Part shown: piece after piece, positions 19,101 through 60,513 of the stretch
Layout of the letters: each line of letters starts with the position of its first letter
How positions within the stretch are numbered: the stretch's first letter is position 1
Origin: Macrostomum lignano
Taxonomy: Eukaryota
DNA: 64,000 nt
Assembly (NCBI GenBank): GCA_002269645.1
Contig: NIVC01000152.1
Coordinates: forward strand, 620,001-684,000
Direction of reading: 5' to 3'
Position numbers and translations under genes: made by a program
Notes under the pieces: generated by a model
What the model saw: only the letters and a program-made list of their open reading frames with translations
What the model was told of the DNA's origin: nothing
Databases searched by the model: none

Positions 19101-19804
19101 CGGTCGCCCCCTACTCATATTTCATGATGCTCCAGACTTGCATCTTGAACAGGCTTGCATCATCAAGACTGAGTAAATGGTCAATAATTAGCAGCCCTGA
19201 GCTGCGGTACAAGTGCAGGATGGGAGTTGCGACCCTTACAATGTCAGAACTGTACAAGCTGTATGCATATCTCGGATGCACCATGCCACTGACTGCAACA
19301 CCTGGGCCATGTTGAAATGGGTCAGGGTGTAATTTCTTTGCTAGTTCTATTGTACAGCCTTTGATTTTATTTCATTGGAATTAGTACATTTAAAATTATC
19401 AAAATCGACAGACATTGCAGAAATTGCTATACTTTGCCAAAAAATTTGCCATGTTATAAGGTAGCATCATAATTCTTATCCTTAATCTTTTGAGCTCTTC
19501 CCAGTTATCAGGCTCCTAGATAGCCAGATGATTGGGTAGATGAAAACTGGATTAGCTAATTAGCCACCAAAAAGTTTGTCACTAGGGCTTAACAAAGAAT
19601 GATAACTAAGACTGGAAAACAGTAGTCCAGGTTGCTCTAATTTAAATTTAATTCAGCACAGTTGTATACCTGAAATAGTGCTGCCACTTTGTTATTCTCA
19701 TCCTGACTTAACCTGGCACATTTATTGTCACTGGCTGGTCCAGGTGGTGTGGCATTTGGACGCTTTGAAGCTGCAGTTTCTGGTTGTTGAGGGTCCTGAA
19801 ACAT
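16124..19804 (-). CDS. TSNAX: Translin-associated factor X (TRAX, C3PO nuclease subunit); exons 19670-19804, 16821-17306, 16124-16303 (~266 aa)
   Basis: Phase-0 GT-AG joins give NKVAALFQ|TFKERLDVKQDRRERIVKLSRDITMESKRLIFTLHR, GLQELIEA, DYLLGVCDLSGELMR and LETMRQSVEKVETVCY, collinear with human TRAX. The start ATG at 19804 is tentative, and a further upstream exon is possible. Confidence 0.9.
16543..16795 (-). mobile_element. SINE family 2 copy in a TSNAX intron
   Basis: The reverse complement of 16543-16686 (GATTAGAAAGTC...GCGTGTGTATGAGTGCGTGCCTGCGTACAGCATTGGCGCTCTTGTAGGTGCTCAG...TCAGCACTGG...GGGACGATG) aligns with 41884-42020. A degenerate tRNA-like head at 16720-16795 is tentative. Confidence 0.7.
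17566..19113. mobile_element. Non-autonomous hAT-like DNA transposon (1548 bp) in TSNAX intron 1
   Basis: TIR TAGGGGGCGACC / GGTCGCCCCCTA, subterminal CCCGGGCCCGAC repeats at both ends, and an exact 8-bp TSD CTCATATT at 17558-17565 and 19114-19121. An internal AT-rich low-complexity tract lies at ~18750-18950. Confidence 0.9.
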
Positions 19805-20339
19805 ATGAAACAAGGGCCCCAAGGGCCAGCTGGAAACTGGATTTCCAACCTTAAAAACCTAGCTTGTAAATAACACTAGCAATATTTATATACTACCATG
19901 CAAATAATAACTACCAAAGTGCAATGATTTGATACAAAGGACCATGGTTTTTGATAGAAAAAATGTTGTACTAAAATAAATTTGAAATTCCACATTTTCA
20001 AAAATGAATAAACATGATTTAAAGAGCATAATTAGATTAAGCACAGGATAAATAATGGATAAAACAAGCTTAATTAAGGGGAAAGTTAATATGTAGGCCC
20101 TGTATTTAGCAAGTTTGCTTCCTTCTTGACAATGCTCGGCCGCATGTTAGGCCTATATTGACTAGGCTAATACCATTTTGTATTATAGGAATTAATAAAA
20201 TTACACACCTGTTCTTTTTCATTTCTTAATTGTCTAGATATTTTGCAAAATTTGATTTTATTAATCTTACTTATAATGAATTTCTATTACCAAAGTTTTT
20301 TACCTAATTTGGTCAAGACTCAATACCCACTAGGGTACA

Positions 20340-21128
20340 GTGGCCACTACCCACTTTTGACCTAAATTAAATACAATCCACTTAAGTAACAGCCATTTTG
20401 GTAATAGCCACTTTAGTAACAAGAATAACCACTTTGGTAATGGCCATTTCAGATTTGGTAATAGGCATAGCAAATTTAGTAACAAAGCACAATAGATTTA
20501 CAACTGTTAACATTTTATTTTTATGATAATTAGGATTAGGCCTAGCAATAATTAGAATTTAGATAAATAATTAACATCTCAAACATCTTATTACCACATA
20601 TAGGCCTAGTTAAACTTTCTAGTTGAACTGTATTATAAATATAATTTGTTTAAACTTGCATATTACTTTGTGAAAAATGAAATGAAAATGAAGCAAAGCT
20701 CAACTGCTTGAGCTGATTATATACATTTGAAATTGAAAAAAATTAAATAATGAAAGAAAAAAAGTAGATTCTATAATTCTAAGTCACTATTCATTAATTA
20801 TAGATTAAAGATTCTAATGTACATAATACACAATAGGGCCTATTTGGTCGATTAGAGGATGTCTTGGGTGCATGTATCTGACTCATCCGGAAATAAGAAT
20901 AGATTGGTTAAAACACTTTTAAACAAGTTAAAAACATGCAGACACACTACACATGTTTTGTCATTCTTAGAGTTTTTCGCACATACTTTTTTGGAGCATA
21001 TCAATTAATACATATAATATGATTCTCACTTGTTACCGAAGTGACTGTTACTGAGATGGCTACCAAAGTGGTCATTTTTTGTTACCAAAGTGGCTGTTAC
21101 TGAAATGACTGTTATCAAAAACCTTAAA
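20340..21128. repeat. MITE-like element with inverted subterminal repeats (GTAACAGCCACTTTGGTAA / TTACCAAAGTGGCTGTTAC)
   Basis: A motif cluster at 20380-20480 is mirrored at 21030-21120. No clear TSD was found. Confidence 0.5.
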
Positions 21129-21744
21129 GGTCACTGGTCAGATCGTCATAATCCATTTTGTCATTCCGGATGACGAAGTGACTAAAAGCAAAGTAGCTTT
21201 GAAAAATAATATGACGAAGTGACAAAATATTTAGTTATGCTGGATACTTCGTCATCAACCAATTAATCTGTGTAAGATTCGAGTTAGTGTTTTTTTTAAC
21301 TATGAGCTGCGGCAAGCAGAACCGAGATCGACAGGTTTTATCAATCGAGATGACAAAATGAGTAATATGTTTATTAATATGTAATAAAGTAAATATGTTT
21401 AATTGCCACAATAGGGCCTAATTCACTTGGAAGTTGGAACTAATATGATTGGTGGATGACGAAATGACTCTCTTCACAGTTTATGGCCGCCCGTTAGCGG
21501 AGCCCATCCCACGCTAAAAATAGCCCGTTAGCGGGGTCCGCCCCACGGTGGGGTGGGCTCCCTTAGCGCGGGCCAGCCCACAATGGTTAGGATATGCCAT
21601 TGCGGGGCTGTGGAGAAGCAGACGCCAGAACTTGACTCGCATTGGTTGTCAAGATACATGGCACTAATTCAAAATAGAAAAAAAACTTTTTTTTCGGCTC
21701 CATTGAGTGAGAACTAAATGCATTGACCTTGCCAGGGCGCTAAA

Positions 21745-24700
21745 ATTGGCGCCCAAAGGCTGAAATTGGCGCCGGTATATTAAACTTGGCGCCCAGAAGT
21801 AGCAAGCTGATATATGCTGCCACTTCTACACTCGTTGGCACATTCCAGCGCTGATTTGGGGATCCTGGCGCCGATTTGGTGATCCTGGCGCCAAATTTGA
21901 CTTTAGGCGCCAAATTGAGCTTTCCCGCGCCAATTTGAGCTATCCTGCGCCGATTTGAGCTTTCTAGCGCCAATTTGAGCTTTCCAGCGCTAGTTAAGGT
22001 CTTCTCAAGCTGATTTCAGCATTCCGGCGCTAATTCGGCGATCCTGGCGCCGATTTGGTGATCCTGGCGCCAAATTAGACTTCCGGCGCCAATTTGAGCT
22101 TTCCCGCGCCGATTTGCGCTATCCTGCGCCGATTTGAGCTTTCTAGCGCTGGTTTAGGTTTTCTTGAGCTGATTTCAGCATTTCGGCGCTGATTCAGCGA
22201 TCCTGGCGCCGATTTGGTGACCCTGGCGCCAAATTTGACTTCCGGCACCAATTTGAGCTTTCCCGCGCCTATTTGAGCTTTCAAGCGCTGGTCCGGGCTT
22301 TTTAGCGCCAATTTGAGCTTTCCAGCGCTAGTTAAGGTCTTCTCAAGCTGATTTCAGCATTCCGGCGCTAATTCGGCGATCCTGGCGCCGATTTGGTGAT
22401 CCTGGCGCCAAATTTGACTTCCGGCGCCAATTTGAGCTTTCCCGCGCCTATTTGCGCTATCCTGCGCCGATTTGAGCTTTCTAGCGCTGGTTTAGGTTTT
22501 CTTGAGCTAATTTCAGCATCCCGGCGCTGATTCAGCGATCCTGGCGCCGATTTGGTGATCCTGGCGCCAAATTTGACTTCCGGCGCCAATTTGAGCTTTC
22601 CCGCGCCGATTTGCGCTATCCTGCGCCGATTTTAGCTTTCTAGCGCTGGTTTAGGTTTTCTTGAGCTGATTTCAGCATTTCGGCGCTGATTCAGCGATCC
22701 TGGCGCCGATTTGGTGATCCTAGCGCCAAATTTGACTTCCGGCGCCAATTTGAGCTTTCCCGCGCCGATTTGCGCTATCCTGCGCCGATTTGAGCTTTCT
22801 AGCGCTGGTTTAGGTTTTCTTGAGCTGATTTCAGCATTTCGGCGCTGATTCAGCGATCCTGGCGCCGATTTGATGATCCTGGCGCCGATTCGGCGATCCT
22901 GGCGCCAAATTTGACTTTCGGCGCCAATTTGAGCTTTACCGCGCCAAGTTAAGCTTTCCAGCGCTGGTCCGGGCTTTATGGCGCTGATTTCAGCATTCCA
23001 ACGCTGATTTGGCGATCCTCGCGCCGATTTAGTGATCCTGGCGCCAAATTTGACTTTAGGCGCCAAATTGAGCTTTCCCGCGCCAATTTGAGCTATCCTG
23101 CGCCGATTTGAGCTTTCTAGAGCTGATTTGAGCTTTCTAGCGCTGGTTTAGGTTTTCTTGAGCTGATTTCAGCATTCCGGCGCTGATTCAGCGATCCTGG
23201 CGCCGATTTGGTGACCCTGGCGCCAAATTTGACTTCCGGCGCCAATTTGAGCTTTCCCGCGCCTATTTGAGCTTTCCAGCGCTGGTCCGGGCTTTTTAGC
23301 GCTGATTTGGCGATACTGGCGCCGATTTAGTGATCCTGACGCCAAATTTGACTTCCGGCGCCAATTTGAGCTTTCACGCGCCAATTTTAGCTATCTTGCG
23401 CCGATTTGAGCTTTCCAACGCTGGTCCGGGCTTTTTAGCGCTGATTTGGCGATACTGGCGCCGATTTGGTGATCCTGACGCCAAATTAGACTTCCGGCGC
23501 CAATTTGAGCTTTCCCGCGCCTATTTAAGCTATCCTGCGCCGATTTGAGCTTTCTAGCGCTGGTCCGGGCTTTTTGGCGCTGATTTTAGCATTCCGGCGC
23601 TGATTCGGTGATCCTGGCGCCAAATTTGACTTCCGGCGCCAATTTGAGCTTTCCCGCGCCGATTTGAGCTTTCCAGCGCTGGTCCGGGCTTTTTAGCGCC
23701 AATTTGAGCTTTCCAGCGCTAGTTAAGGTCTTCTCAAGCTGATTTCAGCATTCCGGCGCTAATTCGGCGATCCTGGCGCCGATTTGGTGATCCTGGCGCC
23801 AAATTTGACTTCCGGCCAGCGCCAATTTGAGCTTTCCCGCGTCGATTTGCGCTATCCTGCGCCGATTTGAGCTTTCTAGCGCTGGTTTAGGTTTTCTTGA
23901 GCTGATTTCAGCATTCCGGCGCTGATTCAGCGATCCTGGCGCCGATTTGGTGATCCTAGCGCCAAATTTGACTTCCGGCGCCAATTTGAGCTTTCCCGCG
24001 CCGATTTGCGCTATCCTGCGCCGATTTGAGCTTTCTAGCGCTGGTTTAGGTTTTCTTGAGCTGATTTCAGCATTTCGGCGCTGATTCAGCGATCCTGGCG
24101 CCGATTTGATGATCCTGGCGCCGATTCGGCGATCCTGGCGCCAAATTTGACTTTTGGCGCCAATTTGAGCTTTACCGCACCAAGTTAAGCTTTCCAGCGC
24201 TGGTCCAAGCTTTATGGCGCTGATTTCAGCATTCCAACGCTTATTTGGCGATCCTCGCGCCGATTTAGTGATCCTGGCGCCAAATTTGACTTTCGGCGCC
24301 AAATTGAGCTTTCCCGCGCCAATTTGAGCTATCCTGCACCGATATGAGCTTTCTAGCGCTGATTTGAGCTTTCTAGCGCTGGTTTAGGTTTTCTTGAGCT
24401 GATTTCAGCATTCCGGCGCTGATTCAGCGATCCTGGCGCCGATTTGGTGATCCTGGCGCCAAATTTGACTTCCGGCGCCAATTTGAGCTTTCCCGCGCCT
24501 ATTTGAGCTATCCTGCGCCGATTTGAGCTTTCTAGCGCTGGTTTAGGTTTTCTTGAGCTGATTTCAGCATTCCGGCGCTGATTCAGCGATCCTGGCGCCG
24601 ATTTGATGATTCTGGCGCCGATTCGGCGATCCTGGCGCCAAATTTGACTTTCGGCGCCAATTTGAGCTTTCACGCGCCAATTTTAGCTATCTTGCGCCGA

Positions 24701-25490
24701 TTTCAGCTTTCCAACGCTGGATCCGGGCTTTTTGGCGCTATTTTCAGCATTCCGGCTCTTATTCAGCGATCCTGGCGCCGATTTAGTGATCCTGGCGCCA
24801 AATTTGACTTCCCGCGCCAATTTGAGCTATCCTGCGCCGATTTGAGCTTTCTAGCGCTGGTCCGGGCTTTTTGGCGCTGATTTTAGCATTCTGGCGCTGA
24901 TTTGGTGATCCTGACGCCAAATTTGACTTCCGGCGCCAATTTGAGCTTTCACGCGCCAATTTTAGCTATCTTGCGCCGATTTGAGCTTTCCAACGCTGGT
25001 CCGGGCTTTTTGGCGCTGTTTTCAGCTTTCCGGCTCTTATTCAGCGATCCTGGCGCCGATTTGGTGATCCTGGCGCCAAATTTGACTTCCCGCGCCAATT
25101 TGAGCTATCCTGCGCCGATTTGAGCTTTCTAGCGCTGGTCCGGGCTTTTTGGCGCTGATTTTAGCATTCCGACGCTGATTCGGTGATCCTGGCGCCGACC
25201 GGCGCCAATTTGAGCTATCCTGCGCCAATTTGAGCTATCCTGCGCCAATTTGAGCTATCCTGCGCCAATTTGAGCTATCCCGCGCCGATTTGAGCTTTTT
25301 AGCGCTGGTTTCAGCTCTCTAGCGCTGGTTTAGGTTTTCTCGAGCGGATTTCAGCATTCCGGCGCTGATTCGGCGATCCCTGGCGCCGATTTGGTGATCC
25401 TGGCGCCAAATTTGACTTCCGGCGCCAATTTGAGCTTTCCCGCGCCGATTTGAGCTTTCCAGCGCCGATTTGAGCTTTCCGAGCGTTTTT
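21745..25490. repeat. GGCGCC-rich higher-order satellite built from ~21-bp subunits (e.g. GCGCCGATTTGAGCTTTCC)
   Basis: Recurring blocks of ~170 bp and longer, each made of diverged ~21-bp monomers. It explains the APEVKFGARITKSAPG ORFs. Confidence 0.93.
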
Positions 25491-25789
25491 GGGCTTTAAG
25501 GCATGACTTCAGGGATCAGCGCAGATTTATATCTATTTGGCACTATAAAAATCAAAAGTGTCATTTTCGGACTTGTTATTGTTTATTGTTTTGTTATTGA
25601 TTATTTTTCAATTAGGTATACTCCATCTAGATCACTGTTTGCTCAGAGTTCAGGATCTACTAAATATCGTTACTCAGCAACATTGAAAAGTCGCCACTCT
25701 ATGCGCCAGAGAGTAATATATTATTAGTGAGTGAGTTAAAATATTATAAATAAAAGATATGATATAAACTAATCAAGGTAGCTTTAATC

Positions 25790-25989
25790 CAGTGGTTCTC
25801 AATCTATGGGTCGCGACCCCCAGTGGGGTTGCGTGACCATTTTCTGGGGTCGCAGCACGAAGAAATGTGTGAGTTTGTCATACAAAATAATGCATTACAT
25901 GTATATTAACTTTAAAAGGGGTCGCGAACATTAAAAATGATGCAAGTGAATAAATTGGGGTCGCCTGAAAAAAAGGTTGAGAACCGCTG
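25790..25989. mobile_element. 200-bp hAT (Charlie-like) MITE
   Basis: TIR CAGTGGTTCTCAA / TTGAGAACCGCTG and exact 8-bp TSD CTTTAATC at 25782-25789 and 25990-25997. Confidence 0.92.
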
Positions 25990-26639
25990 CTTTAATCCGT
26001 TCAACCCTCGCACACCGCTCCCCCACTTCATTCCTCAACTCAAGTCTGCCGCGTGGCGTTGCGTCACTCGCAAAGATTGAGAGACTTCACCTGCACTTTC
26101 AAAAGTGACGACCACAGACTTCTGTGATGGCGACTTTTCGATGTTGCTGAGATTTACGAAGTTATTATAATTAACTTATGATTTACTTTTACTACTTAAT
26201 TGTGCAATGCCTTTGTCTTAATCTTTAACCCACTCGATGCACTGTTAGTGATGAGTTATGTTGCCACACAGAATCGCCCATATCGCTTTTATCGCTTTTT
26301 ATCACCTTCCTCCAGGCCATTCAGTCATGCTACTCTCGTCCTACCCTATAGGTAGTCTGTATCTCTACCTATTGTCCTATCTCGCGATCCTCTCCTTTAC
26401 AGTATATCACTCTTCTGATCTTTCATCACCCTAACCTACAGGAGTAGGGGGGAGGGGGGAGATAGGGCGCATGAGGGCGGGAATCAGAGTTTTCGCAGAC
26501 GGAAATCTTCCTAATGAAGTTTATTAAGCCTTTGAATAGGCCTTTAACCCCCCCCCCCAACTAAAACCGCACCTGCGTGTAATCCCACAATGTGTAGTAT
26601 ATATAATGTATGAAACAATATTTGATGTTTAATGTTTGA

Positions 26640-29600
26640 ATGTCTAAATGTTTGAAAGACTGCCAGAAATCATAGAACCTAGAAAAGCTCATTTTTAATC
26701 TCAATCCACGATTCTTAATTCCCTTTCCCAGAAGGGCATATGGCACCTTTTGCGAGAAACTTGAAAGACTGGGTCAGATATCATAATTCATAAGGCAGAG
26801 AGGAGCTTATGGCACCTTTTTCTAAACGTTTGAAAGACTGGATCATCTATCATAATTCATAAGGCAGAGAGGAGCTTGTTATGGCACCTTTTTCTAAATG
26901 TTTGAAAGACTGCCAGCTATCATAGAACCGTGAGAAGCTCATTTTTTAATCTCAATCCCCGATTCCGAATCCCTATCCCTTATTCCTCGTTTTGGAACCC
27001 GAATCCACGATTCCTAAATCCATATCCCTGATTCCTCATGTTGGAATCCGAATCCACAATTTCTAATTCCATATCCCTGATTCCTCATTTTGGAACCCGA
27101 ATCCACAATTTCTAATTCCATATCCCTGATTCCTCATTTTGGAATCCGAATCCACGATTCTTAATTCCATATCCCTGATTCCTCATGTTGGAATCCGAAT
27201 CCACGATTCCTAATTCAATATCCCTGATTCCTCATGTTGGAATCCGAATCCACGATTCTTAATTCCCTTTCCCGAAGGGCATATGGCACCTTTTGCGAGA
27301 AACTTGAAAGACTGGGTCAGATATCATAATTCATAAGGCAGAGAGGAGCTTATGGCACCTTTTTCTAAATGTTTGAAAGACTGGATCATCTATCATAATT
27401 CATAAGGCAGAGAGGAGCTTATGGCACCTTTTTCTAAATGTTTGAAAGACTGCCAGCTATCATAGAACCGTGAGAAGCTCATTTTTTAATCTCAATCCCC
27501 GATTCCGAATCCCTATCCCTGATTCCTCGTTTTGGAACCCGAATCCACGATTCCTAAATCCATATCCCTGATTCCTCATGTTGGAATCCGAATCCACAAT
27601 TTCTAATTCCATATCCCTGATTCCTCATTTTGGAACCCGAATCCGCAATTTCTAATTCCATATCCCTGATTCCTCATTTTGGAATCCGAATCCACGATTC
27701 TTAATTCCATATCCCTGATTCCTCATTTTGGAATCCGAATCCACGATTCTTAATTCCATATCCCTGATTCCTCATGTTGGAATCTGAATCTACGATTCCT
27801 AATTCCATATCCCTGATTCCTCATGTTGGAATCCGAATCCACGATTCCTAATTCCATATCCCTGATTCCTCATTTTGGAATCCGAATCCACAATTCCTAA
27901 ATCCCTATCCCTGATTCCTCATGTTGGAATCCGAATCCACAATTCCTAAATCAATATCCCTGATTCCTCATGTTGGAATCCGAATCCACGATTCCTAATT
28001 CAATATCCCTGATTCCTCATGTTGGAATCCGAATCCACGATTCTTAATTCCCTTTCCAGAAGGGCATATGGCACCTTTTGCAAGAAACTTGAAAGACTGG
28101 GTCAGATATCATAATTCATAAGGCAGAGAGGAGCTTATGGCACCTTTTCTAAATGTTTGAAAGACTGGATCATCTATCATAATTCATAAGGCAGAGAGGA
28201 GCTTATTATGGCACCTTTTTCTAAATGTTTGAAAGACTGCCAGCTATCATAGAACCGTGAGAAGCTCATTTTTTAATCTCAATCCCCGATTCCGAATCCC
28301 TATCCCTTATTCCTCGTTTTGGAACCCGAATCCACGATTCCTAATTCCATATTCCTGATTCCTCATGTTGGAATCCGAATCCACGATTCTTAATTCCCTT
28401 TCCAGAAGGGCATATGGCACCTTTTGCAAGAAACTTGAAAGACTGGGTCAGATATCATAATTCATAAGGCAGAGAGGAGCTTATGGCACCTTTTTCTAAA
28501 TGTTTGAAAGACTGCCAGCTATCATAGAACCGTGAGAAGCTCATTTTTTAATCTCAATCCCCGATTCCAAATCCCTATCCCGATTCCTCATTTTGGAATC
28601 CGAATCCACGATTCTTAATTCCATATCCCTGATTCCTCATGTTGGAATCTGAATCCACGATTCCTAATTCCATATCCCTGATTCCTCATGTTGGAATCCG
28701 AATCCACAATTTCTAATTCCATATCCCTGATTCCTCATTTTGGAACCCGAATCCACAATTTCTAATTCCATATCCCCGATTCCTCATTTTGGAATCCGAA
28801 TCCACGATTCTTAATTCCATATCCCTGATTCCTCATTTTGGAATCCGAATCCACAATTTCTAATTCCATATCCCTGATTCCTCATTTTGGAACCCTAATC
28901 CACAATTTCTAATTCCATATTCCGATTCCTCATTTTGGAATCCGAATCCACGATTTTTAGTTCCCTTTCCCAGAAAAGCATATGGCACCTTTTGCAAGAA
29001 ACTTGAAAGACTGGGTCAGATATCATAATTCATAAGGCAGAGAGGAGCTTATGGCACCTTTTTCTAAATGTTTGAAAGACTGGATCATCTATCATAATTC
29101 ATAAGGCAGAGAGGAGCTTATTATGGCACCTTTTTCTAAATGTTTGAAAGACTGCCAGCTATCATAGAACCGTGAGAAGCTCATTTTTTAATCTCAATCC
29201 CCGATTCCGAATCCCTATCCCTTATTCCTCGTTTTGGAACCCGAATCCACGATTCCTAATTCCATATCCCTGATTCCTCATGTTGGAATCCGAATCCACG
29301 ATTCTTAATTCCCTTTCCAGAAGGGCATATGGCACCTTTTGCAAGAAACTTGAAAGACTGGGTCAGATATCATAATTCATAAGGCAGAGAGGAGCTTATG
29401 GCACCTTTTTCTAAATGTTTGAAAGACTGCCAGCTATCATAGAACCGTGAGAAGCTCATTTTTTTTATCTCAATCCCCGATTCCGAATCCCTATCCCTGA
29501 TTCCTCGTTTTGGAACCCGAATCCACAATTCCTAAATCCATATCCCTGATTCCTCATGTTGGAATCCGAATCCACAATTCCTAAATCCATATCCCTGATT

Positions 29601-29760
29601 CCTCATGTTGGAATCTGAATCCACGATTCTTAATTCCATATCCCTGATTCCTCATTTCGGAATCCGAATCCACGATTTCTAAATTTATATCCCTGGTTCC
29701 TCATGTTGGAATCCGAATCCACGATTTCTAATTACTTATCCCTGATAAGATGCACTTGTT
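26640..29760. repeat. Composite higher-order satellite: ~60-bp A units plus a variable number of 49-bp B units
   Basis: The marker AATTCCCTTTCC..GAAGGGCATATGGCACC recurs near 26717, 27261, 28046, 28392, 28959 and 29307. B unit: GGAATCCGAATCCACGATTCTTAATTCCATATCCCTGATTCCTCATTTT. Confidence 0.93.
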
Positions 29761-30054
29761 TATATCCCTCAGAGGGAATGGTGAGGGGAAGCTTCTGACG
29801 TTCTAGTTTCTTTAGCTATACAAGTAAATATAGATGTAGTCTTCGCATAAATATTTATGGCACCTTTTATCGAAAGGTTTGAAAGCCTTTAATCGGTTTT
29901 TGGTAGAAGAAAACGACAAGTCAAAGTGGCTGTCAAACCATAAACTCAAGCCAGACTTGTCCACAAACGTGTCCGCAAAATTCGGCAAAAAGCCTTGGAC
30001 TGCGCCTGTATGTGTATTCTAATATCAAAACACAGCTAATAAAAGCAAAAAAAG

Positions 30055-30800
30055 AAGCGTCATGTATAAATGAAAGAAGCGTCATGCAAACAATCATAGA
30101 AGCGTCATGTAAACGATCATAGAAGCGTCATGTCAACAATCATGGAAGCGTCATGTAAAAAAGCATAGAAGCGTCCGGTAAAAATCATACAAGCATAATG
30201 TAATAAATCATAGAAGCGTCCTGTAAACAATCATATAAGCGTCATGTAAAAATCATAGAAGCGTCATGTAAAAAATCATAGAAGCGTCATGTAAAAAATC
30301 ATAGAAGCGTCATGTAAAAAATCATAGAAGCGTCATGTAAAAATCATAGAAGCGTCATGTAAAAAATCATAGAAGCGTCATGTAAACAATCATATAAGCG
30401 TCATGTAAAAAATCATAGAAGCGTCATGTAAACAATCATATAAGCGTCATGTAAAAAATCATAGAAGCGTCATGTAAAAAATCATAGAAGCGTCATGTAA
30501 AAATCATAGAAGCGTCATGTAAAAATCATAGAAGCGTCATGTAAAAATCATAGAAGCGTCATGTAAACAATCATATAAGCGTCATGTAAACAATCATAGA
30601 AGCGTCATGTAAAAAATCATAAAAGCGTCATGTAAAAAATCATAAAAGCGTCCGGTAAAAATAACAGAGGCGTCATGTAGAAAAGAAAATGAGCTTTATG
30701 TAAAAATGAAAAAAGTAAAAAAATGTAAAAAAATAGAAGCATCACGTAAAAATCAATAAGTATCATGTAAAGAAGCGTCATGTCAAAAAGTAGCGTCATT
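30055..30800. repeat. 22-23-bp minisatellite (AATCATAGAAGCGTCATGTAAA)
   Basis: Tandem copies with degenerate edges. Confidence 0.95.
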
Positions 30801-31171
30801 TCAAAATAAAAGAAGAGTCACGTGAAACTGTGCTGTGACTCTTGAGGAGAATTACTAAGATGTTAAGGCTCACGGGGAATAACTGAGATGTACTCGTAAA
30901 TGCTTATGAGGGATTTTTGAGATGTCTAGGTAAAATTCAGAAGCTACATGTAGTTTATTCACTTTTTTATTACATTCTTTGTTAGTTCCCCACGAGGGGC
31001 GCTAATAGAAGAAGCGTCATTTTAAACAGATGAAAGTAGATATAAAAGAAGAGTCATGTCGAAGTTAGGAGATTCATTTGGGAATCGCTACGATGTCAAG
31101 GCTTGGAGGAATTGCTATAATGCTGTAATGTTATAATGACTCTTGGGGAGAATTACTAAAATGGCAATGCT

Positions 31172-31203
31172 TTAGGGTTAGGGTTAGGGTTAGGGTTAGG
31201 GTT
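31172..31203 (+). repeat. Interstitial telomeric repeat (TTAGGG)5
   Basis: Five exact TTAGGG units plus TT. Confidence 0.9.
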
Positions 31204-31620
31204 GACAGATTTTTTAAGATTTCAAGGCTTATGGGGGTCATCGCTCAGATTTCAAGGGGGGGGGTTTGATATGTTAAGACTTGTGGGGGAGGAATTGCTG
31301 AGATGTCAACGCTTACAAGCGATTGCTGAGGTTATTGCAAAGAGACACTACAATCTACATGTAGTTTATTAAAAAAACTCGTACTGCATTTTTTGGCTCC
31401 CCAAGGGGGGGCGCTGATTGCTAGTTAAATTCTGAAAATATGAACCACGAAAAGACAGGAGCAGTTGAAACTGAAAAATAACAAAACTTAGTTCGTATCA
31501 TATCGGCCATCGGGTGTTTCATAGTCTAAATCTGGGATAAAAGTAATCAAACTGGTTTTAAATAAACATTCATCTGCTTCTCATTTTCTATTAATGTTGC
31601 TATGGTGACCAAAGTATCCA

Positions 31621-32584
31621 GGCGATATCCAAGTGCAGGTTTGTGGTGCCCCTATGACATCGCAGCGGCCAGGCCATAGGCGTTGTACATCCTGGGCTCC
31701 AGGTCCGGCTGGACAAAGAATGCCGGCAGCCGAGTGGCCAGGCGGCAATCTCGCCCTCTGCACTCCGGCAACGGCAGAGCGCGCTAGAAGCCCTCGTAGC
31801 GATCGGGCAGAATCTGGATGAGAGTGCAAAATGTGTTTTTGACTGGTTAGTTTCGTTGCTTCGATACATGTCGGCTGTTTTGTGATATTAATTTACAGTT
31901 TCTAAGGTTGTAACTTGTTTCATCAATGATTTAACGGCCCAGCCTTGCTTGCGTCAAAAACTGTAGAATTTTAGCAAAGTAAATCAGTATGTCGATTACT
32001 AGCCAAGGTAAATTCTAGTACCTAGGAAGAAGTACCTAGGTATCCAGGTAATAAAAGTTCCTAGGGAGCGCTGGGAGGAGTGGCGCTCCCACCAGACCCC
32101 TAAATCCGCGCCCCTGGCTACAGCTGTTGCGAAATATTTTAAAAGTGTCATTTTTAGTCAGTTCAGTATACTTCAGTATTTCTGTTTTACTGAACTTTTA
32201 TACTTCGCAATTCAATTTACGAGGGGTGTTAATTCAGAAGTACAATTCAGAAGTACAATTCAGAAGTACAATTCAGAAGTACAATTCAGAATTTACGATA
32301 CAGTTGTAATCAGATAAGGATTTATGGATTCCGACTGGGGCTATTTGTTTTAGACGAGTCAATTATGGATGGAATGTGCTTATCTGTTGTGGTAGGATGC
32401 AATGACTCACTAGGCGGCGCCGTCAAGCATCAGAACGTGGCCGCCGGCCGGCCATCGTCGCGGAACGCCATCTTAGCGGACAAAATCAGCGATGGCCTCG
32501 TTCAGCAGGGGAGGTGAACAGCGTCCCGAGTAGCCAAACCACGGCTAGCCAGCCATGAGGTCTGCTGGCAGCGGATTCTGTCAC
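31621..32584 (-). pseudogene. KDM3: Decayed KDM3/JMJD1-family JmjC histone demethylase fragment (two exon remnants: 32411-32584 and ~31621-31813)
   Basis: Translating from ccag|31813 gives [47 protein letters not shown], then after a frameshift GTTNLHLDIA. This matches KDM3 LPLPEY...[24 protein letters not shown]...GTTNLHLDVS. The upstream remnant is bounded by cgcag| and |gtgagt and gives PHGWLA...AFRD/WPAGGHVLMLDG, versus KDM3 PHSWLC...IFRECWKQGQPVLVSG; this match is weaker. Confidence 0.8.
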
Positions 32585-35155
32585 CTGCGGGTTGATTGCG
32601 GCGGATTGCGTTTAGTGCAACCTGAGCAACTGTAAATTAAAATCACAAAACAGCCGATATGTATCGAAGGGCGATATTTTTTCAGAAAGGGTATCAGAGT
32701 ATCGCTTTTAACCGATACTTTTTCTGAGTATCGTGCCCAACACTGGGTAATTATTATCCCTTTTTAATTGTTTCTTTTCTACCATTTTTGTTTTATTTTC
32801 AAAGTTTTATCTTAAATACGAGCGGGTCCGAAAGATCAGTTTGCTCTAGTGTAAACAGAATTCCAAACAATATTATCGCTTTGCTTAAAATGCTAACATT
32901 CAGTATCTATTTGTACTCCAGCATAAGATCAATTTATTTGACTACTTTACTCTTTATTTGACTTCCTAAACTAGAAAAGGAAATAAGATCATACAGCAAC
33001 CACAATTCAAGTATTTCAGGGCCAATGAAGTGCCAAAGGGGGCGCCAGATTGCCAGAATTTAACGAACGTGAGATGTTGAATATCCGCGTGAATTTAAAT
33101 TTTGTTCAAATTCCTAATTTTTTAACTTTGTGCGGAAATTCAAAATTTATTTTTCCGCCTTTTTTGACAATATTTACAAACGGATGCAGTATACGAGTAT
33201 TCTGAAAATAAAGATAACTGCTAAAGGACAAGTCCAATCTATAGAAATTAGAAAACTGGGACTCAGCGATTCTGCGAATTAGGAAATTAGCCTGTCTGTC
33301 AATTTTAGAATATCTCGCTTAGTACCTTACTTTGCTAAGTTTGTTTTTTTAAATCTTTTACGTTTGAAACGAAATGGATGGCTAGTCGTCCTCACTTCTT
33401 GCGCCTGTACTATTTTTCTTTGACCATATTTCCACCTTTAAGGTTTTGGAAGAATATAAGATTCCTAGCATATTGCAATTATAAGCTAGACATAAAAGAA
33501 AATACAATGAGTACAATGCAAATTAAGAACCAACGTTTGCTTACCTTTGGAATAAAGAAATAACGAAAGCCTTACGAGCGTATTAAGAATAAATCTCAAG
33601 ATCTTAAAGATTCAACTGAGTCAAATAGTTTGATAAATGATATGTATTAAAAAGTAGAAACTATACGTTGAATGAAACGCGTTTCTTTAAAGAATACAAT
33701 TCCTTGCAGCTTAAAACGAAATGCGTTCTAGGAGTTTTTTAATTTTGGGAGAGTTGGGAAAGACAAAGAGCCGTCTTCATCCAGCATACATTAATATACG
33801 AGAAATGAGTCACGGATGTGCAGTGTTTTCAGCTAGCTTCATTGCTAGTACAGTGCTAGTACGCTAGTGCGCACTGGCGTTCCACACTCACCCAACACCC
33901 ACCCCACCTCTCCCTCTCCGCTCGTGGGCTGGCCCCCGCTAAGGGAGCCCATCCCACCGTGGGCTGGGTCCCGTTAACGGGCTATTTTTAGCGTGGGATG
34001 GGCTCCGCTAGCGGCGGGCCGTTAGGTGCTCTTCAGGTAGTGCATGCTAATTAAAATGACGAAGGTGAGCACCCCAGACACCCGAGATGACGAAATGACT
34101 AGGAACCAATTTAAAATTTGACACGAAAAAATATCCTTAATACATTACTCATATTGCTTATAAATACTCCAAAAAGAGACAGTGAAGACTATCCGTAAGC
34201 GGACAACCACTAACTACCTGGTTGCTGTTGTATTAAGTGACGAAGGAATAATGATCAATCAAACATAAATCAGTTATAATTATGTCGTGTAGATTTCAAA
34301 GCCGTAGACAAATTTTAATTTACGGGTGAATTTTTAATTTTTTAATTTTTTAATACTTTAAATAAAATAATTTTTATAAAATTGAATTTTTATTGCTTTA
34401 CTGTCTTTAAGCCAGAAAATCAATCTTGTAAATTTAAAAATTTTGAAAAAAAGTTGTTAGCAATATTAAAAAAAAGCGTGCGTGTTGAGCTTTGCTAAAA
34501 ATTTTTTATTTAAATTCATTTTATTGAAAATTGTGCGCGCAAGGCCCTTGCTCAGTGTGTGTTGACCATAACGTATTAACATAACAAGTTACATTAATGC
34601 GATAAATATAGGATTAGACCCATACTATAGTGTGTTAGCTTATCGAGAAAGATTCAGTAATTCGTCACGGAAGAGAAAATTTTTTTTCGTATTTGTTTGT
34701 TTGTTGGAACATTAAAGTTTTAAGCTAATTGCACTGATTAATCTGTGTTAAGAAGGCCTAGCCAATTAGCTTGACCAAGACCTGCAACAATATTTTGAAC
34801 TTAGCAACGTTTTGAGTATATATACTAAACTGCATCAACAAAATTACAACATGTCTATGCGACACAGACTTGATATTGGTAAAAGCTCAATGTCATCCAG
34901 GTATGTTATATTTCTTTCACATTTGGGGGCCAAGAAGTAAATTTATTTTTTCTAGCATAAACTTGAATTTATAGTAAAGGAGATCACTTTTTCTGGTATA
35001 TTATATAAAAAAATTGAGAGTATGAAGCAGCCATAGTTAGGATCTTGTATTAGTGTATGTTAAGTTTAATGCTAAAAAAATGATGAGACCTTGTTTGTAT
35101 GCCCAGTTTGTGTGCCAATACAAAAAAATTATCATAATTTGACACAATGTATCTG

Positions 35156-36341
35156 CCATAGTCCGGATCATGCTGGGTGCACGCCCGAACAAAAATTGAA
35201 TAATTACAGATGCACGCCAGAAAAAATGTAGTGCACACCCACCATAGTCAGGAAGGTGGCAAGTGCACGCGGGAATCAATTTATGGAAAAATCCTTGGTG
35301 CATGCCAATGTACGCCAATTTTTTAAAACCCTTAACATGACGTTTCTGTTGCATGCCAAAAATCTTGAATACCAAAAATCATGTACGCCTCATGTATGTG
35401 TGATTTGAATATTAACCATATCTAAATACTATTTTTAAATAAATTTTCTACTTATGTTAAACAAAGTTTATACAAAAAAAGGAAATTCGCTACAAAGAAC
35501 ATAGTGAGTATCAAAAACTTTTTCTTCACATTTCAAGAAACAAATAAACTAAAAGTCTACAAAAGTCACAAAATAAGAGCGTTTAAAAGTTATTGGATAT
35601 TTTAATTTTAATGTAGGCTGTAGAGTGTAGGCCTGGCTGTAGGCTAGGCTGTAGCCTCAACTAGTTGGTTTAATCAATATTCAAATTCAATTTTTCACGT
35701 TTAACTTTATATATTGTATATATATAGTGTATACATCTATATTTGACTTGTTGATATACTGTCAGTTTGTAATTGCACGCCAAGGTTACATGCCAAGTAA
35801 AAAACTTGTATGCTGAAAATTTAGGCGTGGCTTGAGACCCCTATTTGCACGCCAACTTTGCATGCCAAAATTTTAGCGTGGCTTGTGCACCCGGGAAAAT
35901 TCCCGCGTGCAGGCCACCTTCCTGAGTATGGCACACCCATTCTCAAAAATATGTCGGTATTGCAACAATAAATGACGTTTTTTATATTGTGACAATAAAA
36001 TAATTTTTTCAAATTGCATAATAGACACTTAATACCAGATAATTTGGTTGCTTTTTATGCTTTTTCGGCAGTACTTTTTATAGTAGAAAATTTTTACACG
36101 CAAAGATTTATTTAATTTTAAATGCCCTTTTACAAGCTTAAAATTTGCGCTTAAAAATTGTTTTCATCTTTTTTCTACTTCACAATAACTCTTACGCGTG
36201 ATTCTTTAAAGTGCATGCCAGGTGTGCACATATACTATCTTCTCAAGAGTGATGCACGCGATCTGTGCATGCCTAGTTTTGGCGTGCAAGGCCAATGCAC
36301 GCCCAAATTTTTGGGCATATACTACATGATCCGGAGTGTGG
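35156..36341. mobile_element. Non-autonomous DNA transposon, TIR CCAYASTCCGGATCATG, 8-bp TSD (1 mismatch)
   Basis: CCATAGTCCGGATCATG at 35156 and CATGATCCGGAGTGTGG ending at 36341. Flanks are TGTATCTG and TATATCTG. Confidence 0.75.
35242..35931. mobile_element. Nested related element, TIR CCATA(G/C)TCAGGAAGGTGGC, exact 8-bp TSD
   Basis: CCATAGTCAGGAAGGTGGC at 35242 and GCCACCTTCCTGAGTATGG ending at 35931. CACACCCA lies at 35234-35241 and 35932-35939. Confidence 0.85.
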
Positions 36342-36764
36342 TATATCTGCTATGTCATCTATGCTAATTGCTAGGATATACTCTGTAAGGCTGAAAAATG
36401 GTAAGACCCTTATTGTACACTAGGATCCTGGCATATATGTTGCCTTCAAACTATGGTAGAACAGTTAAGACTTACGTAAATAATATATCTTCTCTACCTA
36501 TAAAAATCAAAACTCTGTCTGTCTGTGGACAAGTTACTTTGCTATGGACTCCCAAACGGCTCAACCAAATTACACCAAATTTTGCACCCACCCTAAACTC
36601 ACTACAGAGAATGTCTTAGGCTACCTTTAAATTTCCTAAATTTGAGTCTTCCTACCTAAAAGTGCAAAAAACTGCTTAAAATTTGTGATTTTTTACTAAA
36701 TCCTCCATAGTGCCACTCCACTTCTATTGATCCTCTTCAAATTTAACATAATTAATCTTCAAGT

Positions 36765-37775
36765 AAGGAAAGAGAGGAGTCAGAAGAGAGGAAGAGAAGA
36801 GTACATAGGACAGAGGAGAATAGAGATGACAGAAGATAGAGAGGGATGACAGATCAAAGATGAAAGTGAACAGACGATATGAGGAGAGAGGAGAGTGGAG
36901 AGAGAAGAGAGAAGACAAGAGAGGGAGAGAGTATGGAAGAGGGAAGAGAAGAGACGAGAAGAAAGGAGAAAGGAAAGAGAGGAATCAAAAAAGGGGAAGA
37001 GAAAAGTACAGAGGAGAAATGTGAGAGAACATCTGAGAGTAAAGATGACATATGAGAGAAGGGAGATGAGAAAGTAGAAACAAGAGAGAACAGACAAAAG
37101 ATGGGAGAGTAGAGCGAAAAGAGGAGAAATAAGAAATAAGAGATAGGAGATGAGAGGTGAGACAAAGGGAGAGAAGTGAGTGAGGAGAGAGGAGGGGAAG
37201 AGAATTGAGAGGATGGGGGGAAATAGGGGAAAAGGAGGAGAGAGGAAAGGAAAGAGGGGAGAGATTAGAAAAGAGATAGGACAGGAGAGAGCAGAGAGAT
37301 GAAAGAAGAGAGAGAAAGAGACAAAAGGAGAGAGAGAGAGAGAGCAGAGAGAAATGAGAAAAGATAGAGAGAAAAGACAAAAGAAGAGAAAGGAGAGATA
37401 AGAGAGCAAAGACAAGAGAGCAGGGAGGAGAAAGTTGAGAGAAGAGAGAATAGAGTAAAAAAGAGAGAGAGGAGAGATAAGGGAAGTGTTGAGTGTGGAA
37501 AGGGAAAAAACGAGAGAAGAGGGGAGAGAGGAGAGAAGAAAGAAGAGAAAGGAAACAAAAGAGAAGATAGAAGCTTCAAACGATCCAAACATAGGGAGAG
37601 GCAAAGGTAAAGGGCAGAGGCCAGAGTTTGCTTGACATTCTGCGCAGCACCCCAGCCAACAATATCAATGCTTGCTTCAAATCCTAATTTTACACAAGTG
37701 TACTCTATTTTATGTTTAACTCTATCCTAACTATTAACAAGTTTTTGTTTGAGTTTGACCTCAGATTTTAAAATA
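36765..37775. repeat. Polypurine (GA-rich) low-complexity tract with a conserved 3' flank; dispersed repeat family
   Basis: GGAAACAAAAGAGAAGATAGA...GAGGCCAGAG...CAAGTTTTTGTTTGAGT(T/A)TGAC(C/T)TCAGATTTTA is shared with 60510-60645. Confidence 0.75.
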
Positions 37776-40069
37776 CATGCAAAAATGGTTCCAGGGATTG
37801 GAGTTTCCCAGGTTCAAAATCCGTGGGTTTCAACAGCTTGTAACTATACTAAAAATAATTATCAATTTGCATTTAAAAACAATAATAAATGCTTTGTATA
37901 TTTTAAATTAAATGGTTAGAATCTAAAGTTTTATCATTAATCCTAAATGTAGTTTATTTTATATAAAACCTTAACTTTGATAAAATATTATTACCTAAAT
38001 CTTTATTATAGCCAAGATATATTTTTACTGGGTATTTTTCTGCAAAAATCAAAATAGTGAATAATATCTATGTTAATTTTCCGCCATAAGGAGGGTCCAT
38101 ATACCGTAGCCGTAGCCATAGTTTTAACTAAAAGTCTAGAAAACAAAATATTTTGAATCAAGAAGATAACCTGGTGCTTAAACAACTGCAAATTAAGTTA
38201 GAAAATAAAAGTAACAATTGCCTTTGTAAGATTATATTTTGTCTTTTTTCAGAGCAATAATACATAATTGTTACTGAAAGTACTAATTCTGAACTTTTTC
38301 ACATTAATAAAAATTAGAGTTTGCTAGTGTTTTATTGTACTTTTTTAGGTATATTTTAAAAGTTGATAATACAGTTTTCTAAAAGTATATTTGTTTTACT
38401 CTACTTGTTTCTAATATTTTTTCTATTTTTTAACATTAATAACTACGGCTATGGGAATCTATGGAATGTGACAACAACTACCACATTTCCATAGTCATAG
38501 CCATAAAAGCAGCTAGCTACCGTAGGCATATCCATAGCTGCCATAGGCACCTATTTTACCGTATTTGCTATAGGATCCCATAGCTGTAGCTATGGCTACA
38601 GTGGAACACTAATCTATGTAAAACTAAATTATAATAAAATATGGTTTGCCTAATTATACTTTATGCCCTAGCATTTGTAAGTTTAGCTTTGTACCAAAAA
38701 TGGCTTTACATGTTTATAATAAAAAAGTAGACTTAGCCTACTAAGGGCATTTCAGCATATAATCATGGCCATAAAGACTGCTTTTTTGCTTAAAGGTTCA
38801 TTTAAAATGACAATAATAAAATTCAAAAGAGAAAACCCAAAACTGTTCCAATACTAATAATGAACTACAAAATGGTTAAACATAGTACAACTAATAATAA
38901 TAGTTAGACAAAGCCAAAAAATATATGAAAGTATCAAAAATCAATTTATATATGGTCAATTTCTGAGACAAGAGTATTACTTTGACAATAGCCAAGTCTT
39001 ACAACAAAACTAAAATGATATCTAGTTAATAATTGTTACTTTTAGTAGATTCAATATCCTTAAATTGCTAGATAGTTATTTTGATTTTATATGCAATGAA
39101 AAGTAATTTATTATCAATTAGTATCAAGATAATTATATTATTATAACTACTATATCTTACTTTTTCTATAATAAATTTTTGTTAAAGCAAATCAAGGCAA
39201 GATAATATATTAGCTTTTATAACAAATTAACATTAAATATATATTTGGTATTTTTACTAAACTTTTTAGCAATTAGATTAGATTATAGATTATAAAACAA
39301 ATTTATAGTGCAGTGGTTATAAGTAACATATTGATTCTAAATAGTCTCAAGACATTTTAGACCATTTAGGGTTATCTATTAGGCACCTTAGGGATAAAAC
39401 CAATTTGAATCTCACATTAGAACCAATAGACAAAGCAAGTAGACTATTAAATTGATATGGAACTCACTAATAGCTCGTATTATAAACTGTCATTGTTAGA
39501 ATTGATAGAATATTCTTTGCTTGTTTTCAATTTAAATTTCTTATTTAAACTGTTTAACTTACTCTTTGCATTACAGAAGCTGTCTAAATTGATATCAATA
39601 TACTTTGTAATAAAAATCTGTCAATTAAATGTAAATTTAGTCAATGTACTGGTAGCAGTAAGTACTTGACCTACTAGGATTATACTTAGGACTACTAAGA
39701 CTACTTAAATAGGTGAGATATTAGGCCAAAATCATGGCAAAACTAGATTGCTGGTTCATTTGTCTGCTGTCATGCAGTGTCGTGAATGTAATGCTAAGTA
39801 TTTGATTAAAGGAAATACTCTGCCGATTGTCAAAGTTATTGAAAAGTAAGACAGATAACAACAGGTATCTTTCACACTCGTCTTCCACCTTTATTTTACT
39901 CTTCTTCCACTCAAATGCACAATCAATTCATTGAAAACCAGCTTATTATCTTCAGCTCAGATGGCCATAGACACTTTTGAATAGAAAGCCTCATATAAGA
40001 TTTGTTATTAGGAATACGAGTGTGCATTACACTGCCTCGATACTTCAACTAGACAACGTCACTGATTGA

Positions 40070-46956
<6,887 letters not shown>

Positions 46957-54925: not shown

Positions 54926-55654
54926 CTAGATAGTTATATATCTAAATTAAAATATTTATAAATAATACGCTGCTTGAAAACTAATCTAATATTATATTAT
55001 ATTCTACTAGCATACTGGATCTTTACTACTAATATAATACTAATGTGTCATTAAAAATCAAACATTGATTTCCTAGGCCTAATTTGATAAAAATTAATTC
55101 ATTTACTATGATTTACTGGGGGATTTAAGGGGGGACACACAGGGTCAGGGAGCACCCCATTGAGTTAGATTTTTTTAGTTTTTATATGGAAAATACACTA
55201 TCATGTACATGCATGTACCTTAGTAATCTGTGCCCCCATTCAAAATGGTGTAAGACCAAGATGGCCACACACCAAGATGGCAACAGCTGGGGTGGGGGTC
55301 ACGGAAAATGACAGCTGGTTTACTATTGGATAGCTTCGGGTGGGGAGATGTGGGGTTGCAATGGGGGGGGTTTAGACAGGCAGTCAAAATTTTATTAGTT
55401 TATTGCAGGGCTAAAGACAAAAATGGTTACGAGTCTTAATTTCCTACTTATAGTAGGCCCCTAAGAGGTGTAAACATATTTCGTATTAAACAAATCTCTT
55501 CTTCATATAAAATCTGGTGTAGCTTTTTCCAGTTTCTCTTATTGGTCGAGACTAATTTACTTGTTTAAAGGGATAAAAACTGGGTAAATTTCATGCCCTG
55601 TTCAAAATTCATCTGTCTCATTCACTGACAGCAGTCTAAGCACTTAGATACAAA

Positions 55655-58082: not shown

Positions 58083-58117
58083 AAACTCATCAACTACCCA
58101 AGCCGCCCGCCCAAATC

Positions 58118-58310
58118 TATTGCCATTTCAGATCATAACGAGTTAAAAAAGCCAAAAAAATCCGCACTTACTTATTTGTACTGCACCCATTGCTATAATT
58201 TGCTTGAACTTTGTCATCTATCCATGCCACCCGTACCTTATTGCCATTTCAGATCATAACGAGTTAAAAAAGCCAAAAAATCCGCACTTACTTAGTTGCT
58301 GCACCCAATA
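58118..58310. repeat. Direct duplication (~70 bp x2) in the MULE 3' region
   Basis: TATTGCCATTTCAGATCATAACGAGTTAAAAAAGCCAAAAAA(A)TCCGCACTTACTTA occurs twice, about 120 bp apart. Confidence 0.9.
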
Positions 58311-59339
58311 TAGCCCTGGAGCATATTTAAGAATCACCGTGCACATTTCTTGCCAGATATTACACTTTGTTTTACGCTCAAATTTGGGATGGGGGGTTCA
58401 TTGCGTCGCACTTACAGAGCAAACAGCCTTTACTTGGGCTAGTCACTGCATGTATGTGTGACTCAGTGCACTTCTGCCTCCGTAATTCATCATCATCCAT
58501 CATCCCATCATTATGCATGATATTATATGAGCTACGTATACGAGCTATTAAAATGCAGATATGAGATACCTTTTGCACCCACATTCGCAGAACAGCTAGG
58601 CCTGATGAAAGATTTCATAGAAAAACAATTTATTCATTGCTACAAACTGTTGTCAATCCGTTGGTATCTAGAAATAATATGAAATATCGTGAATGGGTGG
58701 CAACTGATGCAGTGTTTTTATTTTTGATTTCCACTTCTATTGAGTTCACATACGAGCCGTATTATTTTGTTTAAGTTGAATACAAAAGGTAGGCGGGGTT
58801 GCTTTCAATTCAAGCTTGAATGAGCAAAGACTTAATTTATGGTCACGGATCGTTACACTCAAGCCAACCCTAGAGCAACTTTTTTCAATTGTGGCCTGTA
58901 CTGATACGATACGATTGGAAGTCATAAATAGTCTAAATAGCTCGTAACTGACTGGCTTGCGTGGAGATAAAAATCTATCTATATAAAACAGCTCACCTCA
59001 AATCAGCCATATCGTTATTTTTCGTTGCAATCTTTTTTTCATTTTTAACATTTCTAGCCAACTGCTATGGTTGGTAACCATGATAACAATTTGGCTCGTA
59101 AATAAATAACTCAATACAGTGAATTTGCATGCAGCACTTAGCATGAAGCCTCGGATTTATTTATGTAAATATCATTTGTACTCTTTATGCGCTGCGGCAA
59201 ATTTGCACAGATATGAGATGCATGTATTTTTTAGCAAGTACTGATACCCAAGAGACGCAAGGCTTCAATCAAAGTCTGAAAATTCTGAAATCTCGTCAAA
59301 ATAAGCCGAACCTCTAAATACATGTACAGACACAAGTCT

Positions 59340-60480: not shown

Positions 60481-60513
<33 letters not shown>

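Follow-up and report, generated by a model that had tools for sequence, protein, structure and literature searches.

Gene fragments in cut-and-paste transposons

Carriage of host-gene fragments by cut-and-paste transposons is routine in plants and rarely documented in animals. Here, a candidate animal case is described in a 64-kb stretch of the genome of the flatworm Macrostomum lignano (the window, meaning the whole of the DNA that was analysed). A 12,552-bp block at positions 21477-34028 of the window is probably a single insertion of a non-autonomous class II (cut-and-paste type) transposon with a 7-bp target-site duplication (TSD), and it holds a broken piece of an exon from a KDM3/JMJD1-type histone demethylase gene. 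The window corresponds to contig NIVC01000152.1, about 620001-684000 (100% match), and the M. lignano assembly is Mlig_3_7, GCA_002269645.1 (PMC10733133).

The closest described systems are the Pack-MULE (Mutator-like element, MULE) and Pack-TYPE elements of plants (PMC8903248). Like them, the flatworm element is non-autonomous, is bounded by terminal inverted repeats (TIRs) and a TSD, contains no transposase that could be found, and has an interior with sequence from a protein-coding gene, in this case a decayed host-gene pseudo-exon. It differs in its animal (flatworm) host, its 7-bp TSD, its cargo of one short piece of one exon and an interior that is 59% satellite; moreover, it is known from a single copy, with a putative parent gene and mode of capture. 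Among animals, Turmoil-1 of C. elegans, a member of the Harbinger superfamily, captured fragments of rsp-2 and cpg-3, including two rsp-2 exons with an intron (PMC2572040). Both are animal cut-and-paste elements with host exon sequence that was later hit by disabling mutations. In contrast to the flatworm element, Turmoil-1 has a Harbinger transposase of its own, is autonomous and makes a duplication of 3 bp, and its fragments lie in 760-bp terminal repeats; its two exons and intron were aligned to the parent gene, whereas the flatworm fragment is an internal, single exon piece with a presumed parent.

With respect to its ends, the element combines a 7-bp TSD with long (105-nt) TIRs, as seen in the P superfamily, whose Drosophila members Galileo and 1360 have a 7-bp TSD and long TIRs, are mostly non-autonomous and are internally repetitive (PMC4168063). 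The likeness to Galileo and 1360 extends to the repetitive interior and is a resemblance only. Galileo TIRs measure several hundred to 1,200 nt against the 105 nt of the element, and the Galileo target consensus, GTANTAC (PMC4168063), is not fitted by the CTCTTCA found here. As for the cargo, the fragment shares LPLPEY, a 20-residue stretch and GTTNLHLD with the JmjC domains of KDM3A, KDM3B and JMJD1C (PDB 4c8d, 2ypd), and it amounts to about 64 codons with a broken frame.

The 12,552-bp block and its empty paralogous sites

Paralogous Translin-DHX15 loci were fetched with a spliced 636-residue DHX15 query, which led to BOX15_Mlig000835g4, through that protein and its cluster. Two of these loci, L003 (NIVC01000789.1) and L004 (NIVC01001477.1), lack the block altogether and are collinear with the window on either side of it, with a Translin-DHX15 spacing of about 2.4 kb in each; a further paralog, L006 (NIVC01001476.1), stops short of the insertion site and was left out of the empty-site comparison. 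Compared with the paralogs, the window is 97.6% identical up to position 20239 and 90% identical over 21387-21476; from 34029 onwards the figure is 93.7%. At the empty site both L003 and L004 read GACGAAATGACT-CTCTTCA-GGTAGTGC, with a single CTCTTCA. The window carries one copy at each edge of the block, and the two TIRs, identical at 91 of 105 positions (left versus reverse complement of right), sit exactly inside both copies (Table 1). Each 105-nt end also has its own 25-nt internal inverted repeat. Because a 7-bp repeat abuts the inverted-repeat ends and the paralogous sites are clean and single-copy, the pattern is the signature of a cut-and-paste event rather than of a chance deletion.

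An earlier, sequence-only reading of the window had placed two KDM3 exons inside a TIR-bounded, satellite-laden element that it called Harbinger-like. The TIR-bounded, satellite-laden mobile element withstands the paralog comparison; its assignment to Harbinger does not, given a TSD of 7 bp and the absence of DDE_Tnp_4 and Myb remnants. A larger segmental duplication reaching beyond the TIRs, which that reading had named as grounds for its own refutation, does not apply: the block ends at its TIRs, between flanks that follow the empty-site paralogs. The L003 and L004 loci contain no KDM3 trace and nothing similar to 31400-32700, so the fragment is no leftover of a local gene.

Several points weigh against a single transposon that brought the fragment with it. 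Over their outermost 8 nt, the TIRs agree in no more than 4 of 8 positions. The TIRs differ by 13%, which exceeds the flank divergence between the paralogs, so they were imperfect already at insertion. No second copy of a TIR or of the interior was found in about 77 kb of other M. lignano DNA; with one copy known, the mobility of a family and the carriage of the fragment by other copies are conjectural. In addition, the KDM3 comparison was made with foreign homologues, so a host origin of the fragment is presumed, and the fragment could have entered after the element had landed.

A decayed piece of a KDM3 exon

Read on the minus strand, 31813-31621 gives 52 residues, then a frameshift, then RGTTNLHLDIA. 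A phmmer comparison of the fragment with PDB sequences matched KDM3B (4c8d; E=1.8e-16) and JMJD1C (E about 3e-12). In the crystallised JmjC domain of KDM3B, the aligned part runs from residue 120 to 185 and takes in the His and Asp iron ligands, and the HxD iron-binding motif is present as GTTNLHLDIA in the fragment against GTTNLHLDV in KDM3B. A profile search of 1.84 billion proteins yielded 1,738 relatives, the best 150 of which, together with six earlier matches, formed a set of 156 KDM3-family proteins for tblastn against the window. All 287 of the 287 high-scoring segment pairs (HSPs) with E<0.01 fell within 31400-31900. Similarly, a KDM3 profile of 899 positions (500 residues upstream and 330 downstream of MYNAY), run over six frames of the 64 kb, matched nowhere but at 31816-31649 (independent E-value 9.5e-17) and, in shifted frame, at 31656-31621. 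Among named proteins, the closest are KDM3A, KDM3B and JMJD1C from echinoderms, amphioxus, chelicerates and fishes, none more than about 60% identical; a Pfam scan of the short peptides gave no match.

The interval 31813-31621 is a genuine KDM3/JMJD1 JmjC exon piece and the only KDM3 match in the 64 kb, in agreement with the sequence-only reading, which had assigned this remnant to KDM3 by its GTTNLHLDIA and HxD motifs and had proposed tblastn with KDM3-family proteins as the check. To judge from the alignment, the source exon codes for the LPxRF-to-HxD segment of a KDM3/JMJD1-type histone H3 lysine 9 (H3K9) demethylase gene, with about 190 nt kept.

The damage to the fragment is of several kinds. 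The in-frame TAG and the frameshift that had been noted earlier are both read on the minus strand, the frame changing between 31667 and 31662. Furthermore, two codons (LN) are deleted, and the substitutions PEYT to PECR (Y to C) and DLGPK to DLEPR (G to E) affect residues that are invariant or near-invariant in the aligned homologues. What is left is far from an intact KDM3 gene, since it lacks the third iron ligand (the second His) and the 2-oxoglutarate site as well as the zinc finger and every other exon. A piece of some 64 codons without the remaining JmjC fold cannot encode a demethylase. It is almost certainly inert, with no function indicated, and it is passive, dead cargo.

The two ends of the fragment are of different character. 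Homology stops at 31621, where the exons of other species go on with VSDAxNVMVYVG, and no GT follows directly; this end is therefore a breakpoint rather than a splice donor. At 31813, a step in base composition coincides with a ccag string (ccag/a at 31814/31813), and composition shifts abruptly at both fragment ends. Upstream of 31813, in the LKLKDWPP region, the apparent homology does not reach significance, with 99 of 1000 shuffles scoring equally high. In an unrelated eukaryote (L007), the intron acceptor lies 4 codons upstream of the ccag of the window, which is neutral on whether a splice site was retained.

Table 1. Positions in the window of the inserted element, its cargo and interior repeats, and the adjoining genes
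Feature	Position	Strand	Basis
KDM3/JMJD1-type JmjC exon fragment (pseudo-exon)	31621..31813	minus	PDB, tblastn and profile matches
In-frame TAG stop inside the fragment	31784..31786	minus	sequence reading
Target-site duplication, left copy, CTCTTCA	21470..21476	.	empty sites single-copy
Left TIR, 105 nt, starts CAGTTTATGGCCGCCCGTTAGCGG	21477..21581	plus	boundary from paralog alignment
Right TIR, 105 nt, ends ...CCGCTAGCGGCGGGCCGTTAGGTG	33924..34028	minus	matched to left TIR
Target-site duplication, right copy, CTCTTCA	34029..34035	.	empty sites single-copy
GC-rich block, not detectably KDM3	32411..32584	minus	phmmer, tblastn, profile, shuffles
Internal satellite, 20-nt unit, 159- to 338-nt higher-order periods	21848..25479	.	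Tandem Repeats Finder
Internal composite satellite, 49- and 69-nt units	26739..29746	.	Tandem Repeats Finder
Internal 23-nt satellite	30053..30684	.	Tandem Repeats Finder
(TTAGGG)5 interstitial telomere-type repeat, five perfect units, ~420 nt from the fragment	31172..31201	plus	direct reading
52-nt inverted repeat, arm 1, 92% complementary, 45 nt from the KDM3 fragment	31859..31910	plus	
52-nt inverted repeat, arm 2	32618..32669	minus	
Translin-family gene, long exon	16752-17258	minus	
DHX15	34851-46956	plus	annotation

Interior of the element and entry of the fragment

Tandem repeats account for 7,365 of the 12,552 nt of the element (59%). Six-frame Pfam scans of its non-satellite parts and flanks (17.3-21.85, 21.48-21.9, 25.4-26.8, 29.7-30.1 and 30.7-40.6 kb) detected no family and no transposase; the same procedure detected the DHX15 domains, which served as the positive control. 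Rfam and tRNA scans of 30.5-34.5 kb returned nothing. The 52-nt inverted-repeat pair brackets the GC-rich block at 32411-32584, not the KDM3 fragment. This pair was considered as a nested miniature inverted-repeat transposable element (MITE) and rejected for want of a TSD, its flanks reading TTG and GGC. The first 16 nt of the repeat recur, in diverged form, as a third copy at 31492-31507. A recurring GGGGGCGC motif around the fragment was also rejected, as it is repeated no more than chance would allow and bears no relation to the TIR of a 1.5-kb insertion elsewhere in the window (see below).

On this evidence, a history can be proposed in which, at one copy of the locus, the element inserted into the divergent intergenic region of about 2.4 kb that separates DHX15 from the Translin-family gene. 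Since it encodes no recognisable transposase, it would have been mobilised in trans by another transposase that recognises its ends. The KDM3 piece would most likely have come along as cargo rather than evolved in place. Most of its decay would predate this insertion, given the heavy damage to the fragment and an insertion younger than the split of paralogs with 94-98% identity in their flanks. The route of entry may have been gap repair with template switching or filler DNA, as proposed for Pack-type elements; alternatively, a genomic chunk may have been mobilised between two ends.

The latter route leads to a separate explanation, in which the 12.5-kb block is a repeat-rich chunk of the genome with an old KDM3 pseudogene relic, mobilised whole between palindromic end units by composite or macro-transposition. 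Each 105-nt end, with its 25-nt internal inverted repeat, does resemble a small MITE-like unit, the interior mixes unrelated satellites, the telomere-type repeat and a separate 52-nt inverted repeat, and the fragment has decayed far beyond what a young insertion allows. However, neither end unit is bordered by its own duplication on the inner side, and satellites are so widespread in the genome, down to the introns of DHX15 and TBC, that a mixed interior says little. Such a composite origin is unlikely, if conceivable.

Entry of the KDM3 piece after the insertion, either as filler DNA at a double-strand break or within a small nested element, is distinctly improbable. Interstitial TTAGGG tracts are left by break repair, and the (TTAGGG)5 tract lies close to the fragment; the 52-nt inverted repeat abuts the fragment, and base composition changes abruptly at the ends of the fragment. 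Yet a stop, a frameshift, a deletion and radical substitutions are hard to fit into the time since the paralogs, 94-98% identical in their flanks, diverged, unless the piece was already decayed when copied, and neither a TSD nor a TIR surrounds the fragment alone.

The GC-rich block and the question of superfamily

The sequence-only reading had described two KDM3 exon remnants in order, with the block at 32584-32411 as the first and with retained intron boundaries, and had taken this arrangement as a sign of capture at the DNA level. The splice-like strings on which it drew (cgcag, gtgagt and ccag) are present in the sequence: ccgcag/g at 32585/32584 and /gtgagt at 32410-32405 bound the GC-rich block. 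The block itself could not be related to KDM3 by any of the methods used. Its phmmer search against PDB sequences gave nothing at E<=10, tblastn of the 156 KDM3 proteins gave nothing on it with E<1, and the KDM3 profile did not match it in six frames; each of its three minus-strand frames has 2-4 stops. A frameshift-tolerant profile-to-DNA alignment, which gave 81.7 bits on the 31813-31621 fragment as a positive control, gave 12.6 bits on the minus and 12.8 bits on the plus strand of the block. A score of 12.6 bits was reached by 98 of 400 dinucleotide shuffles of the block and by 26% of 1,344 natural windows.

Many KDM3 queries did align weakly to GVPRRWPAGGHVLMLDGAA through their conserved VPHSWLCDGRLLxLxD motif; these HSPs are one chance-level match common to related queries. 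A look-alike of the VPHSWLCDGRLL motif, matching at 9 of 18 positions, is at chance level. The weak tblastn matches to VPHSWLCDGRLL beat 40 of 40 shuffles by their mean-best score, yet failed the profile tests that followed, in which 49 of 1000 and 17 of 1000 shuffles scored as high and plus-strand scores were similar. The block is indistinguishable from background. With one exon fragment detectable, the argument from two exons plus a retained intron is without sequence support, and with it the argument for DNA-level capture loses its basis.

These results bear directly on the proposal of a PIF/Harbinger-type Pack element, with a TTA duplication and GGCC ends, that captured two consecutive KDM3 exons and their intron as DNA. 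Harbinger elements are characterized by 3-bp duplications and a specific transposase (PMC2572040), and the proposal can draw on the symmetric TTA set one base outward from the GGCC at each end (21481-21483 and 34022-34024), on the AG and GTGAGT strings either side of the GC-rich block, and on Turmoil-1 with its two rsp-2 exons and intron as an animal precedent (PMC2572040). Nevertheless, the empty sites in the two paralogs put both TTA copies inside the inserted DNA and show the duplicated target to be the 7-bp CTCTTCA instead of a TWA trinucleotide, so that a TTA duplication can be salvaged only with an extra 18-nt indel at the same spot. TWA-flanked TIR pairs around the fragment (32, versus 26 in the control) are at control level, and the proposed first exon is at background level. 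The TIRs are 105 nt long and those of Harbinger elements about 25-50 bp, a comparison of length alone. No DDE_Tnp_4 or Myb remnant was detected in any frame of the scanned element parts and flanks, and this absence alone does not exclude Harbinger, as a non-autonomous member would lack both. The proposal of a Harbinger-type element with two captured exons is highly improbable.

Neither a THAP domain nor a P-type transposase, nor a Pfam match of any kind, was obtained in the element. Besides its resemblance to the P superfamily, a 7-bp duplication is compatible with MULE or hAT elements.

Finally, the notion that the block is ancestral, with the fragment an in-place KDM3 relic between Translin and DHX15, and was lost from the paralogs by deletion between CTCTTCA microhomologies is scarcely credible: a deletion between 7-nt direct repeats would leave an identical single-copy empty site, but the direct repeats exactly abut the outer ends of the 105-nt inverted-repeat pair, as expected for transposition, the same clean site occurs in both L003 and L004, and neither the window nor the paralogs show any trace of a further KDM3 exon.

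Host genes and other insertions at the locus

The host genes of the window comprise a homeobox exon, a RabGAP-TBC gene, the Translin-family gene, DHX15 and a GGCT-like gene; no gene is annotated in 24851-34850. The 207-residue GGCT-like open reading frame (ORF) occurs exactly on two contigs of GCA_002269645.1, and look-ups of an 89-residue window ORF and of the DHX15 exon ORF found no exact record. According to Tandem Repeats Finder, tandem arrays are spread all over the window, host introns included, for example those of DHX15 and TBC. Large minisatellite arrays occupy the DHX15 introns at 42023-42445, 42894-43463, 43827-44372, 44798-45856 and 46268-46748. The DHX15 gene extends over 12.1 kb of the window; its length is 12.5-14.2 kb in L003 and L004 but just 5.7 kb in L006 (NIVC01001476.1, 4771-10512).

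Other insertions were observed along the same comparison. A 6,618-bp insertion at 55247-61864, absent from the about 99%-identical contig NIVC01000910.1 (L001), has an 8-bp duplication, TTCAAAAT, and TIRs of roughly 40 nt. Its 326-residue ORF (56797-57777) shows a weak match to a MULE transposase domain, which at Pfam E=0.0011 does not pass the cut-off; the insertion has the look of a Mutator-like element that arrived recently and may be autonomous. L003 and L004 also lack an insertion of 1,545 bp at 17567-19111, whose duplication, ACTCATATTT, measures 10 bp and whose termini are AGGGGGCGACC...GGTCGCCCCCT. This is a second non-autonomous DNA element, unrelated to the 12,552-bp block, and it lies within the range matching the Translin gene annotated in L003. 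As these two further polymorphic insertions have clear TIRs and duplications, DNA transposons have been active since the locus copies diverged. No clear ends were seen for two other differences, namely about 1.15 kb of the window at 20240-21386 in place of some 20 nt of L003 and L004, and about 1 kb of L003 (7648-8673) that is absent from the window. L003 1-2298 (NIVC01000789.1) carries a long terminal repeat retrotransposon pol gene (RVT_1, RNase H, integrase) overlapping its TBC gene range; unlike L003, the window has no such pol ORF of at least 110 residues.

Significance for the flatworm genome

No report of a flatworm transposon that carries a host gene fragment was found. A far-reaching extension would be a still-mobile family of satellite-rich Pack-type transposons that shuffles host exons in this neopolyploid flatworm, its KDM3 cargo giving rise to small RNAs that influence either the host's H3K9-demethylase gene or the silencing of the element itself; this is very doubtful. 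The reading preferred here, of one non-autonomous element with dead cargo, provides a gene-fragment-carrying transposon with clean insertion evidence, in the form of two empty paralogs, a TSD and long TIRs, and hence a concrete case, open to testing, in a flatworm model that is neopolyploid. It also places a satellite-filled element of 12.5 kb in a divergent promoter region of about 2.4 kb, some 0.8 kb from the annotated start of DHX15, and the locus can serve studies of the divergence between homeologous copies that follows genome doubling.

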